A DNA stretch of 64,000 bases from Anthoceros angustus. Its lineage: Eukaryota; Plantae; Anthocerotophyta. Both the position numbers and the translations under genes were made by a program. The notes below the pieces were generated by a model. That model did no database searches, was not told the DNA's origin, and was given only the letters and a program-made list of their open reading frames with translations. The stretch's first letter is position 1. Each line of letters opens with the position of its first letter. The stretch lies in NCBI GenBank assembly GCA_010909165.1, contig MU008164.1:496001-560000 (forward strand), read 5' to 3'. Below, one piece after another: positions 1,390-64,000 of this stretch.

Positions 1390-4300
1390 CTCCCCCTGGT
1401 CTATACGTCCCGTTCTTCGGCCACCGTGGTGGAACTAGCCACCTCCCCACTTGACTACCCAACTGTGGCATATTGTGAGCATTCCTAGCATATATAGACA
1501 CCTCGTATCCAAAAATCACCAAAACCCAAGGACTCTATTTCCGACCTACCGACGAAAAAAATTATTATTATCACCAAGGGCCAAGGACCATTCCCGTATA
1601 AAAGGCCTTACCCAGACGATTCTCAAAGCACTTTGCTATACTAACACACCCAAAACAAAAAAAATCGTTCAACCCGACACTTCGGAGAGGGGTTAGTGTA
1701 CATGTGGTCTTCCACAACGCCCAAGGCTGCAGGTGGCGTCGCTTGTTTTTTCCGATCTTCTCTCTCTGATTTCATCACTGTCGCTAGGGAGGACTCCTTC
1801 GCGAGGGTCTTATGGATCAAGGTTTCCGCAACCATCCTTCCATCTGTTTGTCATTTGTTCATAGCATGCTGTTACTTTCCACCTCAGGGTTCTCCGCATG
1901 CTAGAGGCCAACCTCTCTTTACGTTTCAAGACCTCTTTGAAGATCTCATGTTTTTCATGCCCCAAGGAGATATCCTCTTGGTTGGAGACTTCAATGCTTA
2001 GACCTCCTCGGAACAATCTCCTATCTCGCACGGATGATCGACATCAACTATTCCGCTTGATGTTGCACTGGGCGGAGAAGGTCGATGATCCGCACGAGTT
2101 AATCTTTTCGGGCACTTCTCAACCTCGTGGAGTCGCATGGATTATTTATATACAACGGACTCTCTCAATGGCCTGGGAGCGAGAGGATCACCCACTTTGC
2201 GCCTTCAGGTCAACTTCCTGCTGTTCTTGATTACGTTCTAGGACAGGCTTCTTTCGTTTCTTCAGTGCATCAATTTTATGTTTCTGACTTCAAGCCTCTA
2301 GAGTCTGACCATGCCTTCTTGTCTTGGCACATCTCGTGTCATAAGCCGCAAGCCATTCTACAATACCACAAGTCTCCTAGAGTCCGCTTTCCCTCGACCA
2401 TCGTCTAGATTCCCAATACTCCTCTCTTTTGAAAAGACCCTTGGCTGCTATTCCTCCGTCTCTTCCCTTCGCCCAGGAAGCTTCTGCTTTCACTTCCGCC
2501 GTGCTTTCTTGTGCACATCAAATCTTCTCTCCTAAACCTTGTCACCCCGTCAAGCTTTCCAACATCGCCTCGTCATCCTGGTTTGATGGCGAGTGCAAAC
2601 GCTTCGCTTCCATACTCACAACTACCTTGAGCTCTCAAGGTTCCATCCAAGTCTCATCATTCCAGTTGTACAAGGAAATTGTCAAGCCGCATAAAGCCCT
2701 CATTCTTTGTCAAAAGTGCTTTCTTTTCCTCCCAACGTGATCGTCTTGTCAAGCTCCTTAAGGAATCCCTGGCGGTCTTTGCTTTTTGGAGGAGTTTCAT
2801 TCCCATCAAACTATCCAAGCAGCGTCTCGAGCTTATCGAATATGTCCAAACTCTCTTCTTCGGAATCTATACCCCTCCCAGTTAGGACCATGGATCCCGG
2901 GGTCAAGCTTTTCACTCGACCTTATCCTTACCGCCATCAATAACCTTAGATCTGGTAGAGCCCCGACCCTGAAGACATTCTTGGAGAGCTTTTCTCGTAT
3001 GCAAGTCCTATGGTGATTGCTCCCCCCTTGGCTGCGCTGCTTCAACGAAGCTTTGGTCCATGGATTTCAGATGAGTGGTGCTGGAATGACATCCATTCCA
3101 TCTTCAAGACAGGTGACCCCCAGCTCCCATCTAACTATAGGTATATCATGGTTGAGTCCATTTTTGCCAAGATCTTTAGCTCTTGCTTGGAAATTCTCAC
3201 TCGACTTGGGAGAATCTTTGGAGTTAGGGCCGCAGGGCGGTGGATTTCGTCCATGAATACCGGATAATCTCTTCACTCTCATTGCTATTATTCGAAGCCA
3301 AGAGCGAAAGAAGGATAACATGAGCATGTTTATGTATGTTTTGTTGACTTCAAGCGGGCATTTGACTCTATCTCGGGAGAAGCTCTTTTGACCGCTTCCA
3401 TAGGTGGGTATGCCTCCTCATCTTCTTCATGCCATAGGGGTTCTATATGACAAGGTGAAAGCCAAGATCCGCACTCCTTATCTTGCTTTTGACCTTTTGG
3501 ATTTGCTTTGCAACATGGGAGTCGTGAGGAGATCCATCTTCTCCTAACCTATTTGGCCTCTACATAGATGAACTGAGTCTTGGATTGCGGAGTATGGGGA
3601 TCTGGTTGCATCCTTTCCTTGGTCTACATTGCTATTCTCTTGTATGCGGATGACATTGCCCTTCTCTCCCACTCTCCTCGGGGCCTCCAACAAAGAACTT
3701 GACATATTGTCGCGCTTCTGCGAAGCAAGAGATTTGGAGGTCAATCTCAAGAAGACTAAGGTCATGTTCTTCAACAGGATCGGTGCAACACAATCTCAAG
3801 TTCTACTATAATGGTGAACTTGTCCGTAGTTCGATCTTATGTCTACAGGTGGAACTCTGGCCCGACACTTGGAAGCTCTGCCTCACTCGCATTCTCAAGG
3901 GTGTGGCATCGGCATGTGGGGTTCAAGATGCTCTCGGATGCACATCAAGGACATCCCCACTCAATGGTTATTCAACACGGTCGTCGTTCCTTGGCTATGT
4001 ATGCGTGAGTTTTGGGGACCGTACCTCTCTCCCGACGATTGGTGCAAGGTGGAGGAGGTTCGGGCATCCTTTCTTCGTCCCACATTGCGTGCAAGAGGTG
4101 CATCCCCTTCCCATCTTCCTTGCGAGTTTGCCACATTCCGCTTGAGTGGATGGTCTATTTCGCTTGACTAACTTCTTCTACCGCCTCTGTTCATTGGAAG
4201 AAGCTCATTCGATCATCCTACCTCCCTCCTCATACCTCCTTCTTGCTTTTCAGTCCTCCGAAAATTAGCCGTCTCGGGAGATAAGACTTGTTGGTATCAA

Positions 4301-4987
4301 TCTTGCTCATGGCGCAGAATTTGGGTTTTGTCCCGAGAGTCTTCCGCCCATCCCTTTTCCAGTTCTTGCCACCTCCTCCAAATAAGTCCATCCGCCTTGA
4401 TTTGCGGACTACATACTTGTCCTATACTTGGTCTCCTCTCTCCCTTATCCCTAGGCTTGACACTTATAAATGATTTCAGATTTTATCCAATTCGGGAAAC
4501 CGGTGCTCCCTCTTTACCTTCGCACCGTGTCTTTCAAACTAAGGATGATTATAGGTCATCTTAGGTGGGTCTCACCGTCTTAGGATTGAGACGGATAGAT
4601 GGCTCGTCCTAAGCCACCAAAGGAGTCCAATTTGCGGGTTATGCAAGGGGGCGAAGAACACTTTGTGTTCCTCTGTCACAGATATGAAGATATTCGGGGG
4701 AATTTTATCCCTCTATTTACAACGACGATCTTCACTTCACGCTTTTCTCTTTTCGATCCTATTTACAGAGGTGTCTGCCTAAAGCAAACGTGGGAGAAGC
4801 GGACTCAACATTTTCAAGAGTTCAACATACCTGACATTACATAATGGTTCACGTCACTAGTTCTCCGGCCAGATTCAGAATAGCGGTTAATTTTTCAATA
4901 TACTTTCTTTGTATGTATGACAAATCATTCCCATGACGGAAATCCGTCCTTAGTGGACTTAAATAAAATTCTTCTTCTTCTTCTTCT
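1390..4987 (+). mobile_element. Degenerate non-LTR retrotransposon (LINE), APE endonuclease + reverse transcriptase, RTE/RTEX-like; 5' boundary uncertain
   Basis: Frameshifted fragments: endonuclease motifs GGVACF, CYFPP, LLVGDFNA (1696-2001) and DYVL...SDH (2127-2408). RT motifs IFKTGDPQLPSNYRYI (3010-3267), FVDFKRAFDS (~3340), LxYADDIAL-type (~3640) and VNLKKTKVM. C-terminal SHRLRIETDRW...CxxC...EEHFVFLCHRYEDIR (~4570-4700). 3' end has a hairpin, AATAAA and (TTC)6 at 4969-4986. Clade assignment is inference from the C-terminal motif and microsatellite tail. Confidence 0.85.
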
Positions 4988-5289
4988 GGTACATAGAGCT
5001 CCATCAAAACTCTGGAGTTAAGCGCCCCAGGCCCGGATCAGTACCGGGATGGGGAACCTATATGTTTTGATGAATAAAAATCGGAGAAGTTGCTTATCCG
5101 TCGAACCGTCCCCTGCCACCCCATTGGTGGGTGCGAGGCAGTGGCTACCACGCCGCCGCATTTACCTCGGTTCACGAGGCGTACCCATGGGAAGCCGTCA
5201 CTTCGGCTTCTCCCAAGACTCAGAAGTACACTCGGCTCTGCTGACCATGTGAGAGTGGCCTGATATACCCCACAAATGGGCAGAAAAAT

Positions 5290-5722: not shown

Positions 5723-6184
<462 letters not shown>

Positions 6185-24319: not shown

Positions 24320-25050
24320 TTCCACCCCATCATGTCCCCGATAATTCCACCTCCATAATGTCCACCAATAATTCCACCTCCATCATATCCATCGACTTAG
24401 ATGAGTCATGAACCTCCATCATATCCATTCTATATCGTCCCATTCATCTTCTCTCATTCCATCCTCATGCATACTCATCTTCATCCTCATCCGCATACCC
24501 ATCTTCATCCTCATTTTCATTTTCATTTCCTTCATCTTTATTTTCATTGTCATCCTCATTTTCATTTTCATTTTCACGGTCGTTCTCATTTTCCTTCTCC
24601 TCCTCATCTTCATTTACATTTTCATTTTCATCCTCATCTTCTTGCTTGTCCTCGTCTTCATTTTCCTTTGCATTTTCATCGTTATCTTTCAGCTTCTCGC
24701 ATCTTCATCCGACTCAACTCCTCCGATTGTAAGCCTAGCAAGATCTTCACAACACACATTTATGTAGAAAATAATATCTTCTACCTCCATCGAATCTATT
24801 GGATATTCCACCTCCATCACATCCACCGGGATTCCACCCCTATCATATCCATTGAGAATTGGAGCTCCATCATATCCACTAACCAAATGAGTCTTGAACC
24901 TCCATCATATCCGCAATATGTCGCCCCATTTTGCTATGGGCAAGCTGAGCTCCCAAGTGTGAACTTTTAGTGCGAGACCTCATCCTCATCCTCAATTTTA
25001 TTTTCATTCTCATCTTCATCGGGCTCCTCATCCTCATCTTTCGCTTCAAA
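24320..25050 (-). other. Low-complexity (TCA/TTTTCA)-rich block; minus strand reads as acidic D/E/N repeats and DMMEV-like repeats; present in all 7 full units
   Basis: ORF 35807-36166 reads DVMEVEYPIDSMEVED...DENAKENEDEDKQEDEDENEN. DNA motif TCCACCTCCATCATATCC is repeated. The frame is broken differently in different copies. Confidence 0.7.
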
Positions 25051-44100: not shown

Positions 44101-47100
44101 TCGCAGAGGAAGTCAACATACATGCACTAATGTTCCTGACTCGAGTTTATGGATTTGGCGGTTTCGGGTTTATTTAAACACGGCAACGATTGAACGCGCA
44201 TCCAACAGACTCGGCGACTCCATGGAAGGCTTGCTTATAGTCTCAAATTGTCTTGGATCTTAATCACGGCAATTTGGAGGAGACTCGGAGGCCTTCACTC
44301 GGTTTGCCCGAGTTGAGGTACATGAATGTGTCCAACAACGATCGAAGTCGTGGCACATCCTCTGTCGGCTATTTCAACGAGCCAAGCCTGCTTGCTAACA
44401 ATTCAACTTTGCGGTGCTCTTCTTCCGTCCTGTAATTATGGCGAATGGGGCGGAATCCAACTGCTTCAGGATGAGATGATCATCCCGATCAAGCAAACCC
44501 AAAGACCAAGGACCAAAACTGTTTCTAAAGTTGCATAGAGCAAAGCCAAAGACCAAGGACTCAAAGCTACTGCTAAAGTTACAAACAAGCAAACACCAAA
44601 ACCAAAAGCTCCTCCAAAATTTCACAAATGAAGATTAGTATCAATTGTTACAAGGTTCTAGCTTTTTACGGTGAAGGTGGATGGTCAAGACGAGAAGGTG
44701 TCATGTTGCGATGTTGCAGCAATCACAGTTGTTCACATACCCCAAGATCAGAGAAGCAATGATCGGATGGCATGCTTGTAGCTAGTGGGGCCTCGGTTTG
44801 TAACTCTGTTGTATTTGTCTTTGGAGGTTTTGTTCAATGTATAATACTATTTTCTACAACATTCACTATGGGCGCCTCTCGCAGAGGAAGTCAACATACA
44901 TGCACTAATGTTCCTGACTCGAGTTTATGGATTTGGCGGTTTCGGGTTTATTTAAACACGGCAACGATTGAACGCATCCAACAGACTCGGCGACTCCATG
45001 GAAGGCTTGCTTATAGTCTCAAATTGTCTTGGATCTTAATCACGGCAATTTGGAGGAGACTCGGAGGCCTTCACTCGGTTTGCCCGAGTTGAGGTACATG
45101 AATGTGTCCAACAACGATCGAAGTCGTGGCACATCCTCTGTCGGCTATTTCAACGAGCCAAGCCTGCTTGCTAACAATTCAACTTTGCGGTGCTCTTCTT
45201 CCGTCCTGTAATTATGGCGAATGGGGCGGAATCCAACTGCTTCAGGATGAGATGATCATCCCGATCAAGCAAACCCAAAGACCAAGGACCAAAACTGTTT
45301 CTAAAGTTGCATAGAGCAAAGCCAAAGACCAAGGACTCAAAGCTACTGCTAAAGTTACAAACAAGCAAACACCAAAACCAAAAGCTCCTCCAAAATTTCA
45401 CAAATGAAGATTAGTATCAATTGTTACAAGGTTCTAGCTTTTTACGTGAAGGTGGATGGTCAAGACGAGAAGGTGTCATGTTGGGATTTGCAGCAATCCT
45501 CGTTGTTCACATACCCCAAGATCTGTGAGTAGGGCGCTCTTGGATGGCATGCTTGTAGCTAGTGGGGCCTCGGTTTGTAACTCTGTATTTGTCTTTGGAG
45601 GTTTTGTTCAATGTATAATACTATTTTCTACAACATTCACTATGGGTCCTATGGAGGAAGTCAACATACATGCACTAATGTTCCCGACTCGAGTTTATGG
45701 ATTTGGCGGTTTGGGGTTTATTTAAACACGGCAACGATTGAACGCATCCAACAACAGACTCGGCGACTCCATGGAAGGCTTGCTTATAGTCTCAAATTGT
45801 CTTGGATCTTAATCACAATTTGGAGGAGACTCGAGCGCTTCACTTGGTTTGCACGAGTTGAGGTACATGAATGTGTCCAACAACGATCGAAGTCGTGGCA
45901 CATCCCGTCGGGTCTCATTTACGAGCGAGCCAAGCTTTTTGCTAACAATTCAACTTTGCGGTGCTCTTCTTCCGTCCTGTAATTATGGCGAATGGGGCGG
46001 AATCCAACTGCTTCGTGTGGATGAGATGATCATCCCGATCGATGGTATTTACGGTCGAGTTGTTACTATCCATTCTCGCGATATGGGAGAGAGCACTCCA
46101 AACACAAGCAAAATCAAATGAAGTTCGAAATGAGAGCACTTGTCACCCACATCTCTCTTCGCAAACTTCGCCCAGCCATGCCTAACTTTACACACACCTC
46201 GGAGATTGGGTGGGCGGCTTTGGCACCTGCGGAAGGCAGCGATGGCAATGTGGCAATCAAAGGAGCAAGCGTGAGGGCTCACCTATAGATAAGCCGCCGT
46301 TTAATGACGTGAGAATTTTATCGAAGTCAATCGAAATAGCTAGTCAAGTCGTTAGGTTGTTGCTTGAGAAGAAAGTTGCTCTCCTTGTCTTGAGTTATGT
46401 TCCCAAGGGCACCTTACATAAGGGAAAAGGGAGGGATGCGTCCAGCTCACTTGGAGACAACGGCCGCCTACGGATTGCTCTTCAAACCTTTGAGGCTTTA
46501 GAGTATCTACATTTAGCAGCCCAACGAGATCTATGTTTCATAGAGATGTTAAGTCTTCAAATTTAAACATTCTTCTAGACCACTACCTAAATGCTAAGGT
46601 GGCTCATTTAGCATTTCAAAGTCAGCCCAATGGGCGCTAGTCATGCATCCCTTGTAATCGGGGCACCTTGGCGGATTACCTTGATCCCGAGTATTATACA
46701 AGCTTATAGTTCCAAAGCCAAAGTGATTGATATCTAAAGCTTTAGTGAATGCGTGTTATTGGAACTTATTTCAGCTAGTTAACTCTCCGTGATATCTTTT
46801 GAAGACATATGATGAGGCAACGTTAGGAATTGGCGTTCTTTGTGAAGAACAAGAGGATTGGAAACTTTCTGTGAAGAACAAGAGGATTGGGAACCTTCGT
46901 CGATCGGCCCTAATAGAAACTTTGAATTCCGCTCTTTGGCATTGAAATCAAGAGACCGACTATCTATTAAGCGGTATGAAAGAGATGATATATATATATA
47001 TATATATATATATATGCTTTCAAATATTTGTTTTGATCACTTGAGCATCTCCCAATCACAAATATATGGTGATGTTAAGTGCACCATCTCTTTGCAAAGT

Positions 47101-60054: not shown

Positions 60055-60625
60055 ATGTAAGGTTCATCTAGTATTTTATATCATATATAGGTCTTATATA
60101 GTATATTATATCATCATATAGGTCTTATCTAGTATATTATATCATCATATAGGTCTTATCTAGTATTTTACATCATTACACAAAAGGAAGAGTAAATAGG
60201 TCTCCACTACTCACTTGTAGGATTCATCTAGTATTTTATATCATATATCACTACACAAAAGAAAGAGTAAATAGGTCCTATCTAGTATTTTATATCACTA
60301 CACAAAAGAAAGAGTGAATAGGTCTTTACTGCTCACCTATAGGGTTATCTAGCATTTATATCACTATACAAAAGAAAGAATGAATAGGTCTCCATTGCTC
60401 ACCTATAGGGTTTATCTAGTATTTTACATCATTACACAAAAGAAAGAATGAATAAGTCTCCACTGCTCACCTTTAGGACTGATCTAGTATTTTATATTAC
60501 TACACGAAGATACCCGCAGGATTTATCTAATATTCATTTCACTACATAAATGTAGTGTCGGCTCCTAATACCCCGATTTATCTAATATTTATTTCACTAC
60601 ACAAATGTAGTGTCGGCTCCTAAAA
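60055..60625. repeat. AT-rich minisatellite built on ATCTAGTATTTTATATCACTACACAAAAGAAAGAGTAAATAGGTC; second copy at ~61640-62205
   Basis: About ten TCTAGTATT-anchored subunits of 25-70 bp. Confidence 0.85.
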
Positions 60626-61588: not shown

Positions 61589-63370
61589 ATAGCCTACAAT
61601 GTTCTATCCTTTATAACTTACATCTTTTATAAACTCACATGTAAGGTTCATCTAGTATTTTATATCATATATAGGTCTTATATAGTATATTATATCATCA
61701 TATAGGTCTTATCTAGTATATTATATCATCATATAGGTCTTATCTAGTATTTTACATCATTACACAAAAGGAAGAGTAAATAGGTCTCCACCACTCACTT
61801 GTAGGATTCATCTAGTATTTTATATCATATATCACTACACAAAAGAAAGAGTAAATAGGTCCTATCTAGTATTTTATATCACTACACAAAAGAAAGAGTG
61901 AATAGGTCTTTACCGCTCACCTATAGGGTTATCTAGCATTTATATCACTATACAAAAGAAAGAATGAATAGGTCTCCATTGCTCACCTATAGGGTTTATC
62001 TAGTATTTTACATCATTACACAAAAGAAAGAATGAATAAGTCTCCACTGCTCACCTTTAGGGGTGATCTAGTATTTTATATTACTACACAAGATACCAGA
62101 TTTATCTAATATTCATTTCACTACATAAATGTAGTGTCGGCTCCTAATACCCCGATTTATCTAATATTTATTTCACTACACAAATGTAGTGTCGGCTCCT
62201 AAAAACCCCTCACGTTATTGCACATGTGTGTAAAGGTAGGACCTATCATTATCTCCTCAGTAATAATGGGTGGGTCCGCACCTCAGGAATTGATCAATCC
62301 AGTCCCTCCTCATCCATATCCCATCTCCATGCATCCCATGTCACCCCTGCATGCACATGCGAGGCATACCAAAGGCGGGTCCATCCCATGCCTCTGCGAG
62401 GCATCGAGTATGAGGCATCGAGTATCGCTGAAGGACGATGAGGGAAGCTTGGGGATGGACCCCGGATTTTGGCATGCCATGGACGGTGGATGCGAAGAAG
62501 GCAATAGTGTGTGGTGGGCTCCATTCTTTGTACACACGCAAGTTAAGAGTATATTAACAAGAGGGTGGTACAAAAGAAAGCTGACCGGCTTGCGTGATGT
62601 GACCAAGGTGAGCATCTATATCGCGTGATGCGGACCGATGTATTGTCTACAATCTCTAAATGGCTACGCTTATGGAGACTGACTCACACGTTGATGTCTT
62701 AGATATCAACATGACAAGATGTTGGAACTTCAAGAATTGAAGAGTCGCTCTGCGTCAGTAATTCCTTACGCCTATGGCATCCCATAGCCGATCTTCAAGA
62801 AAATTGAAGGAATGAGACTCACCGGCGGTGTCAACATCGCCCATCTCACCTTGTACTTGGCAGCAGTAGAGCGGGCCCCCGCCGTAAGGGTAGAGCTCCG
62901 GTGCCACCCGCTTGGACTGCAACTCCTTTAGCAAGGGAGTGAATATGGCCCAGGCGGCATCTTTTCGTCGCCTCTGATGAAAAGGCGCCGCTCCCCTTCG
63001 ATGGCGTCCAACAACAGTCGGTTTAGAGTATGGTAATAAGAGTGAATAAGTCTTGCAAGTTAAGAGTATATTAACAAGAGGGTGGTACAAAAGAAAATGG
63101 TTTAGAGTATGGGAATAAAAGTGAATAAGTCTTTACTAGGTACTCATCTGTGGGGGTTATTTGATAACTTTTTATATCATTATATAAGAAAATTTATAAT
63201 ACTTTATCAAGAGGGAAGAATTCTTCATTACTCACCTTTAGCGTATAAGCTTAAAACGTGTTTACAAAAGTAAGTCTCACTACTTGATAATTCTCCATGA
63301 CTCAGCTTTTGGATTTTCGCTTAAAATGTGTTCATTAAAGTGAGTAAGTCTCTACTATTCGCCTTCATGT

Positions 63371-63606
63371 GGGTTTAGGTCTGGAGCCCATGCCCAAATG
63401 GCTTAGGCCAAATGAACACACATTTATAAGAACGTCGTGAGTAAACATCCTGCGCTTAGATCAGTACTTAGATGGGGTGCCTAAAGGGAGTGGATGCCCT
63501 TGGTGCAAGTAGCTTAGGCACACCATGGTACAAGTTGTTAAGTACCAAGTCCCATGACGGAAATTCGTCCTTAGTGGACTTAAATAAAATTCTTCTTCTT
63601 CTTCTT
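63371..63606 (+). mobile_element. Short non-autonomous retroposon (SINE) with a 5S-rRNA-like segment and a LINE-derived 3' end
   Basis: TSD CTTCATGT at 63363-63370 and 63607-63614. 63550-63589 is 39/40 identical to the LINE 3' end at 4929-4968 and is followed by (TTC)7. 63411-63490 aligns without gaps to plant 5S rRNA nt ~22-101 at 45/80 by hand count. Confidence 0.8.
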
Positions 63607-63700
63607 CTTCATGTTGCCACTTTGTGTTGCATCATTCACGAGTGTCAACATGAACGCGGCCTTTTCATTATGGATTTTGGGAAAGAATGTGTGTATCTGC

Positions 63701-63831
63701 CTGTGGTTTAGATTCTCGCCTTTGTTTAATGCAGCAATACATTCTTAGTTTACTCTAAAGTGAATCTGTGGTTTAGATTCTCGCCTTTGTTTAATGCAGC
63801 AATACATTCTTAGTTTACTCTAAAGTGAATC
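63701..63831. repeat. 65-bp perfect tandem duplication
   Basis: CTGTGGTTTAGATTCTCGCC...CTCTAAAGTGAAT occurs twice. Confidence 0.92.
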
Positions 63832-64000
63832 AAAATGTGACGCTTTATCTTTTCTTTAGGTGTCTATATTATTAGCTTGAAATAATAAAAACAATCACAT
63901 AGTTGATGTTGTCAATTGTACCACACCACAAAGAAGTGGGACTTGCACAAAAAAAAAAAAAATTACATAGTCCAAGTGAAAGTTGTAAAGCAGATTGCGT

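Follow-up and report, generated by a model that had tools for sequence, protein, structure and literature searches.

Results

Structure of the insertion and its surroundings

The element analyzed here occupies positions 63371 to 63606 on the plus strand of the window, by which we mean the whole 64-kb stretch of DNA that was studied. It is 236 bp long, begins with GGG, and ends in AATAAAA followed by a run of TTC. Two copies of the 8-mer CTTCATGT bound it on the plus strand, the left target-site duplication (TSD) at 63363 to 63370 and the right one at 63607 to 63614. Since CTTCATGT occurs just twice on the plus strand of the 64-kb window, at 63363 and 63607, and hence solely at both junctions, the 8-bp duplication is no chance repeat. 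The (TTC)n tail (63590 to 63606, plus strand) enters the right TSD, with a (TTC)7 run that spans 63590 to 63610, and the first three bases of the duplication could equally be assigned to the tail. A correlation between the 3' microsatellite and the first base of the TSD is reported for RTE-related SINEs and LINEs (PMC6007223). The open reading frames within 63371 to 63606 are short and trivial, and the element contains no T4 run, the first TTTT downstream being at 63662. An earlier interpretation made from the letters of the window (here, the sequence-only reading) had described a noncoding insert of about 236 bp with a GGG start, a (TTC)n tail, and an 8-bp TSD overlapping that tail, and all of these features are present at the coordinates given above. 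The element is a retroposed insert with its own TSD and an old, mutated copy of its family.

From 5' to 3' on the plus strand, the element opens with an atypical stretch of 23 nucleotides (nt) that starts with GGG (63371 to 63393) and is foreign to the rest of the family. It is followed by the 5' part of the family core (63394 to 63425), in which similarity to 5S rRNA is unclear and which holds ACACACA at 63416 to 63422. The 5S-like region (63426 to 63489) is colinear with 5S nt 37 to 100, the internal control region, and includes an A-box-like block at 63439 to 63453 (5S nt 50 to 64) and a C-box-like block with the core GATGGG at 63469 to 63486 (5S nt 80 to 97). Next comes a body (63490 to 63549) that is similar neither to 5S nor to the LINE copy of the window, and then a LINE-derived 3' end with a stem-loop and AATAAAA (63550 to 63589), which matches the 3' end of the window's LINE and leads into the TTC tail.

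Several other repeats were observed in the window. A perfect tandem duplication with a 65-bp unit (63701 to 63831) lies 90 bp downstream of the element. Upstream of it lie two copies, in the same orientation, of a segment of about 1.5 kb (60149 to 60505 and 61733 to 62091, with 60975 to 61016/62538 to 62579 and 61376 to 61461/62901 to 62989 also duplicated), and both copies of this segment hold 68/122-bp tandem repeats. The region from 24400 to 48400 is a tandem array of approximately seven units, most of them about 3.44 kb long and two longer (4.4 and 5.0 kb), with pieces of receptor-kinase-like exons and His/Phe-rich low-complexity open reading frames; 13-mers that mark these units are found at 24751, 29198, 32659, 36091, 39535, 42981, and 47952. 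Matches of 23/36 to 5S nt 1 to 36 in the tandem units (at 45656, 44886, 44108, 40671, and 30327) do not extend into the 5S body and were set aside as chance similarity within a repeated exon.

A decayed LINE with the same 3' end

A decayed LINE is recognizable from 1696 to 4986 on the plus strand of the window, with endonuclease and reverse transcriptase frames, the same 3' stem-loop as the element, and a (TTC)6 tail at 4969 to 4986. A Pfam match to Exo_endo_phos on 1696 to 1998 corresponds to a piece of the LINE endonuclease, and broken LINE frames, some of them typical of reverse transcriptase, run from about 1700 to 4850. Judged by its size (about 3.3 kb) and its microsatellite tail, this LINE may be RTE-like. 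A protein-atlas look-up of a LINE piece was uninformative on the clade, and searches for related DNA with open reading frames of the window, LINE pieces, and a pseudo-ORF across the element returned one 1.7-kb contig with a LINE fragment that is 49% identical.

BLAST of the element against the window gave one strong match, in which 63550 to 63606 (57 nt) and 4929 to 4985 are 98% identical. The similarity begins abruptly at 63550, and upstream of this position no alignment of the element to the window's LINE copy was found. The shared piece folds into a stem-loop, in which the one difference between the two copies keeps the inner stem paired as G-U. SINEs with LINE-derived tails have a 3' end in common with a resident LINE, and here this common end comprises the 57 nt with the stem-loop and (TTC)n, so that the tail of this copy pairs specifically with the LINE of the same window. 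Such a layout is the usual one for a SINE that borrows the recognition end of a LINE, and we infer that the LINE of the window may have mobilized the element, as the sequence-only reading had proposed for the resident LINE.

Abundance and 5' end of the family

Logan contigs of four runs were mapped on 63171 to 63806 at a likeness of at least 80%. The records obtained, which are numbers of contigs and not exact copy counts, were 2166 for run X1 (organism A, the probable source species; 98 Mb of contigs), 1076 for X2 (organism B), 488 for X17 (organism D), and 114 for X5 (organism A, a run guessed to be RNA, whose contigs extend into other sequence). The repeated part reaches from about 63394 to about 63558, and the flanks carry the locus's own contig alone, at a depth of about 9. 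Since thousands of contigs lie on this core, 63371 to 63606 belongs to an abundant SINE family. In the terms of SINEBase, abundance is seen in the records of X1, X2, and X17, and the unit is short (less than 1 kb), interspersed, and nontandem, with its own TSD and unlike flanks. An 18-nt core searched against metagenomes gave two chance matches in bacterial coding sequence and zero copies.

On the 5' side of 63394, the contigs that read on differ from each other (agreement of 0.41 to 0.47) and are alike just in a short ...TGTGTGT before 63394; the contigs that diverge just upstream of this position number 41, 22, and 19 in three runs. Because these upstream continuations are unlike, the copies must be dispersed and have no common LINE sequence there. 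The core is thus found on contigs of three organisms with unlike upstream flanks, which bears out the proposal of many dispersed copies instead of a single one. Depth over 63371 to 63393 falls to about that of the locus's own contig (25.8 versus 9.07 in the flank). The sequence-only reading had taken GGG as the 5' start of the family; this part of it has to be given up, since 63371 to 63393 is covered almost solely by the locus's own contig. These 23 nt may be 5' nucleotides that were added, may reflect a source copy that started farther upstream, or may mark a rare subfamily. Additionally, TGTGTGT is complementary to the ACACACA at 63416 to 63422, and ordinary copies therefore probably carry a 5' hairpin. 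Downstream of 63557, the other copies have tail variants that are related yet different. These copies are known from contig pieces, in which the family 5' end and further TSDs are not directly visible.

The distribution of depth along the element differs in two of the organisms. The body and tail (63479 to 63566) are far commoner than the 5S-like head in organisms B and D, and the summed depth in X17 is about 210,000 for body and tail versus about 4,000 for the head. The body module in these organisms is probably common to other repeats.

Similarity of the head to 5S rRNA

The Rfam covariance model RF00001 gave no 5S match for the element at the gathering score on the whole window, and none at an E value of ≤10 on 62500 to 64000, on 63371 to 63606, or on the trimmed segment 63411 to 63490. 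The same procedure detects the fragment at 4988 to 5063 described below and true 5S genes. The silence of RF00001 means that the 5S fold is not kept and that the sequence signal is modest; the covariance check that the sequence-only reading had put forward is thus without a match on this copy.

Reference 5S genes for a direct comparison came from a scan of genome_contigs with a eukaryotic 5S pattern, which gave 60 contaminant loci in bacterial assemblies, and L008, L036, and L048 were used; viral contigs scanned with the eukaryotic 5S pattern gave no match. True 5S genes score 113 to 117 bits with RF00001. L008 is a typical angiosperm 5S (113.5 bits), L036 is the 5S of another eukaryote, and the reference, L048:409-527 on the minus strand, is a typical angiosperm gene (115 bits) and not the host's own 5S.

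Against L048, the element aligns free of gaps in a register in which 5S nt p corresponds to window position 63389+p. Over 5S nt 22 to 101 (63411 to 63490), 44/80 positions are identical, or 46/80 when the majority letters of organism A or D are used, these letters being a swap by coordinate at nine or fewer listed positions. The register and the gap-free alignment proposed earlier therefore stand, although the identity is 44/80 and not the 45/80 given there. When the 80-mer was slid over the window on both strands (127,842 positions; mean, 19.7; standard deviation, 3.8), the best two positions were 4988 (47 matches) and 63411 (44 matches), and the third best reached 37. For 63411, the binomial tail is 6e-9 per position and 8e-4 after correction for the window. 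Furthermore, a local alignment with majority letters gave z=6.0, and 0/500 shuffles reached its score.

Similarity is not even along the 5S gene. Nucleotides 1 to 15 and 101 to 119 of 5S are at chance and nt 16 to 36 are marginal; consequently, the part that is kept is the internal control region alone. The proposed span of about nt 22 to 101 accordingly shrinks to nt 37 to 100, with nt 22 to 36 marginal and the rest outside the internal control region at chance. Over 5S nt 37 to 100 (63426 to 63489), 38 of the 64 positions (59%) are identical to the angiosperm reference in this copy and 40 of the 64 (62%) with family majority letters, and in this 64-nt comparison a score of that height is reached at just 2 of 127,874 positions of the window. 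SINEBase sets the threshold for a SINE at 60% identity or more to tRNA, 5S rRNA, or 7SL RNA along 60 nt or more (PMC3531059). Measured with the angiosperm reference, the identity straddles this line, at 59% for the copy and 62% for the majority letters. In this comparison of sequences, the head is colinear with the 5S internal control region, and its similarity to that region is statistically clear.

The promoter-like blocks follow the same register. The block at 63439 to 63453 corresponds to 5S nt 50 to 64, which by Xenopus numbering we take to be the A box. The majority letters of the family are T at 63441 and G at 63445 in all four runs (4/4), which gives TTAAGC, as in 5S nt 52 to 57; the copy in the window carries G and A, respectively, at these sites, so that its A-box core is mutated at both positions. 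The C-box core GATGGG equals 5S nt 82 to 87 and lies in 63464 to 63477, the least variable stretch of the family in 4/4 runs, where no variant reaches 10% in any run except at 63470 in X17. Both cores are thus the same in the family majority as in 5S, and they stand at the 5S spacing. By hand count in strict register, 9/15 positions match 5S in the A-box block, 3/6 in the IE, and 9/18 in the C-box block. Of the A- and C-box-like blocks of the sequence-only reading, the cores agree with 5S in the family majority, the blocks as a whole match at 9/15 and 9/18, and the A-box core is mutated in the copy at hand. These blocks would predict a Pol III type 1 promoter and the use of TFIIIA.

A 5S-like fragment next to the LINE

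A second 5S-like sequence, at 4988 to 5063 on the plus strand, adjoins the (TTC)6 tail of the LINE and covers 5S nt 35 to 92, approximately. Rfam ranks RF00001 first for this fragment, at 18 bits and E=0.066 over model positions 22 to 98. Compared with plant 5S, 42/58 positions are identical (z=15), and compared with the head of the element, z is about 5.5, a score that 0/1000 shuffles reach. The 5S homology starts near nt 35 (window position 5001) and ends near nt 92, and TTTT follows at 5067. Perhaps 5S-like sequences are preferred targets of the LINE, or perhaps the LINE and the 5S fragment form a repeated composite. An (ATA)n microsatellite of about 158 units (5723 to 6184) lies just downstream of the LINE and this fragment.

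Discussion

We consider it likely that 63371 to 63606 is an old copy of an abundant, LINE-dependent SINE family, built of a head from the 5S internal control region, a body unlike both 5S and the LINE copy of the window, and a LINE tail, and that, as part of the same claim, this family occurs in this land plant and its relatives. Under this explanation, the master copies would be transcribed by Pol III from an internal promoter of the TFIIIA type. The +1 position in the 5S register would be 63390, near the apparent start of ordinary copies, and the transcript would pass through the element, which is free of T4. The reverse transcriptase of the LINE would then recognize the common 3' stem-loop and the (UUC)n repeat, and priming at a nicked site with an end that fits the repeat would give rise to an 8-bp duplication that overlaps the tail. 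Integration would in this way occur by target-primed reverse transcription. The copy in the window itself is probably inactive, because its A-box core is mutated and it carries the 23 atypical 5' nt, 19 nt beyond the predicted start.

The alternative that survives best is a LINE-dependent SINE whose head does not come from 5S, the 60% identity over 64 nt being convergence or chance and the promoter being another or an unknown one. This is unlikely, even if RF00001 finds no match, the identity lies at the threshold, and 5S nt 1 to 36 and 101 to 119 are unrecognizable. The match is gap-free over 64 nt, ranks second among about 128,000 positions, remains at 8e-4 after correction, and rises with the family-majority letters. 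Furthermore, conservation is best at the A-box and C-box cores, which keep the spacing of 5S, there are no tRNA-type boxes, and no other Rfam family fits. A loss of the outer parts of 5S is also known from SINE3 and Ajax, which keep the promoter region alone; in these elements, described by Kojima, the promoter motifs are conserved, the upstream part has diverged, and there is no 5S fold (PMC10886601).

It is rather improbable that the 5S module was acquired second-hand, from a Cassandra-type LTR or from a dispersed 5S variant such as the fragment at 4988 to 5063. Promoter modules of 5S do occur in the Cassandra LTRs of ferns and angiosperms (PMC10946416), and both the fragment and the element have GATC.GTAC and GATGGGG where angiosperm 5S differs. 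However, the alignment columns in which the element equals the fragment only (5) and those in which it equals 5S only (6) reveal no special affinity, and the states common to the element and the fragment may simply be the host's own 5S sequence. The LTR pair, PBS, and PPT of a Cassandra-type donor are also missing near the element.

A 5'-truncated LINE subfamily whose 3' untranslated region includes this sequence, so that the element would not be a SINE at all, is very improbable. The 3' 57 nt are indeed LINE sequence, and the summed depth climbs toward the 3' part, strongly in organism D. Against this stand the absence of similarity to the LINE copy of the window upstream of 63550, the disagreement among upstream contigs (0.41 to 0.47), and an insert with its own TSD at 236 bp. 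A plain truncated copy of the LINE, which the sequence-only reading wanted to see excluded, was rejected for the lack of LINE continuity upstream of 63550 and for the heterogeneous upstream flanks of the other copies.

The remaining candidates were rejected more readily. A 5S pseudogene is contradicted by the lack of an RF00001 match, the extra body and tail, and the thousands of copies. A Cassandra TRIM would need a second copy of the head, of which the window holds none. The closest PBS-like site lies at a distance of 6.4 kb, and the surroundings of the element yielded neither an LTR pair nor a PBS or PPT. The element stands as one unit, with a LINE tail and an 8-bp TSD, so that its earlier separation from Cassandra is upheld. 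A tRNA head, as in SINE2, was dismissed since ARAGORN finds no tRNA in the window and Rfam no tRNA match at an E value of ≤10, and the best tRNA-type A and B boxes have 2 and 3 mismatches, respectively, and lie about 97 nt apart, which is the wrong spacing. A SINE that arose from a LINE-interrupted 5S gene predicts a 5' sequence that does not match.

The SINE3 of zebrafish was reportedly described by Kapitonov and Jurka in 2003, and Cassandra TRIMs are said to have been described by Kalendar et al. in 2008.

According to a 2024 review, 5S-derived SINEs occur in fish, reptiles, insects, and mammals, and none are known in plants (PMC10946416). Among the insects, lepidopteran HaSE3 and its relatives are 5S-derived SINEs (PMC3272025, PMC10886601), and 5S-related SINEs have also been found in the fungus Aspergillus fumigatus (PMC5063351). 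Our literature search found no report of 5S-derived plant SINEs, which agrees with the novelty in plants that the sequence-only reading had supposed, with an unpublished Repbase or Dfam entry being possible. The element resembles the animal and fungal 5S SINEs as a short noncoding retroposon with a head like the 5S internal promoter region, in which the promoter-like blocks are conserved and the part upstream has diverged (as in SINE3 and Ajax, PMC10886601), and with a LINE-borrowed 3' end, TSDs, and a high copy number. It differs from them in its host, a land plant, in the restriction of the similarity to 5S nt 37 to 100, approximately, at about 60% and beyond the sight of RF00001, and in its tail, a (TTC)n microsatellite with a stem-loop.

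The likeness to Cassandra is that of a plant mobile element with a 5S-type Pol III promoter module, which is predicted in the present case. In contrast, Cassandra has two LTRs, a PBS, a PPT, and the machinery of LTR retrotransposons, whereas the element consists of one unit that ends in LINE sequence and a microsatellite tail and has an 8-bp TSD. With the Au-like SINEs of plants, whose LINE partners are of the RTE clade, it has in common the 3' terminal sequence and microsatellite-like tail of a LINE and a TSD start that fits the repeat (PMC6007223). However, those SINEs have tRNA-derived heads, of which this element has none. From 5S rRNA genes and retropseudogenes (RF00001), with which it is colinear over nt 37 to 100, the element differs in lacking the terminal helices, in its extra body and LINE tail, and in thousands of copies with common substitutions relative to 5S. 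SINEBase separates SINEs from pseudogenes by such features (PMC3531059).

A more far-reaching interpretation can be put forward only tentatively, as we give it somewhat less than an even chance. The family would be a genuine land-plant SINE3 transcribed by Pol III, the first in the plant kingdom, and the type of element from which Kalendar and colleagues, as cited in PMC10886601, derived the Cassandra 5S module; its partner LINE would perhaps prefer 5S-like targets, as its tail abuts 5S at about nt 35 at 4987/4988. The proposed ancestor of Cassandra itself is a SINE3 that had inserted into an LTR (PMC10886601).

The copy at 63371 to 63606 offers a clean pair of SINE and LINE tails in one window, together with a statistical control within that window. 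A 5S-type head on an abundant SINE would close a gap in plants. If true, such a SINE would provide a candidate origin for the Cassandra promoter module, and it would add a second type of Pol III promoter to the biology of plant SINEs and to the annotation pipelines that look for tRNA heads.
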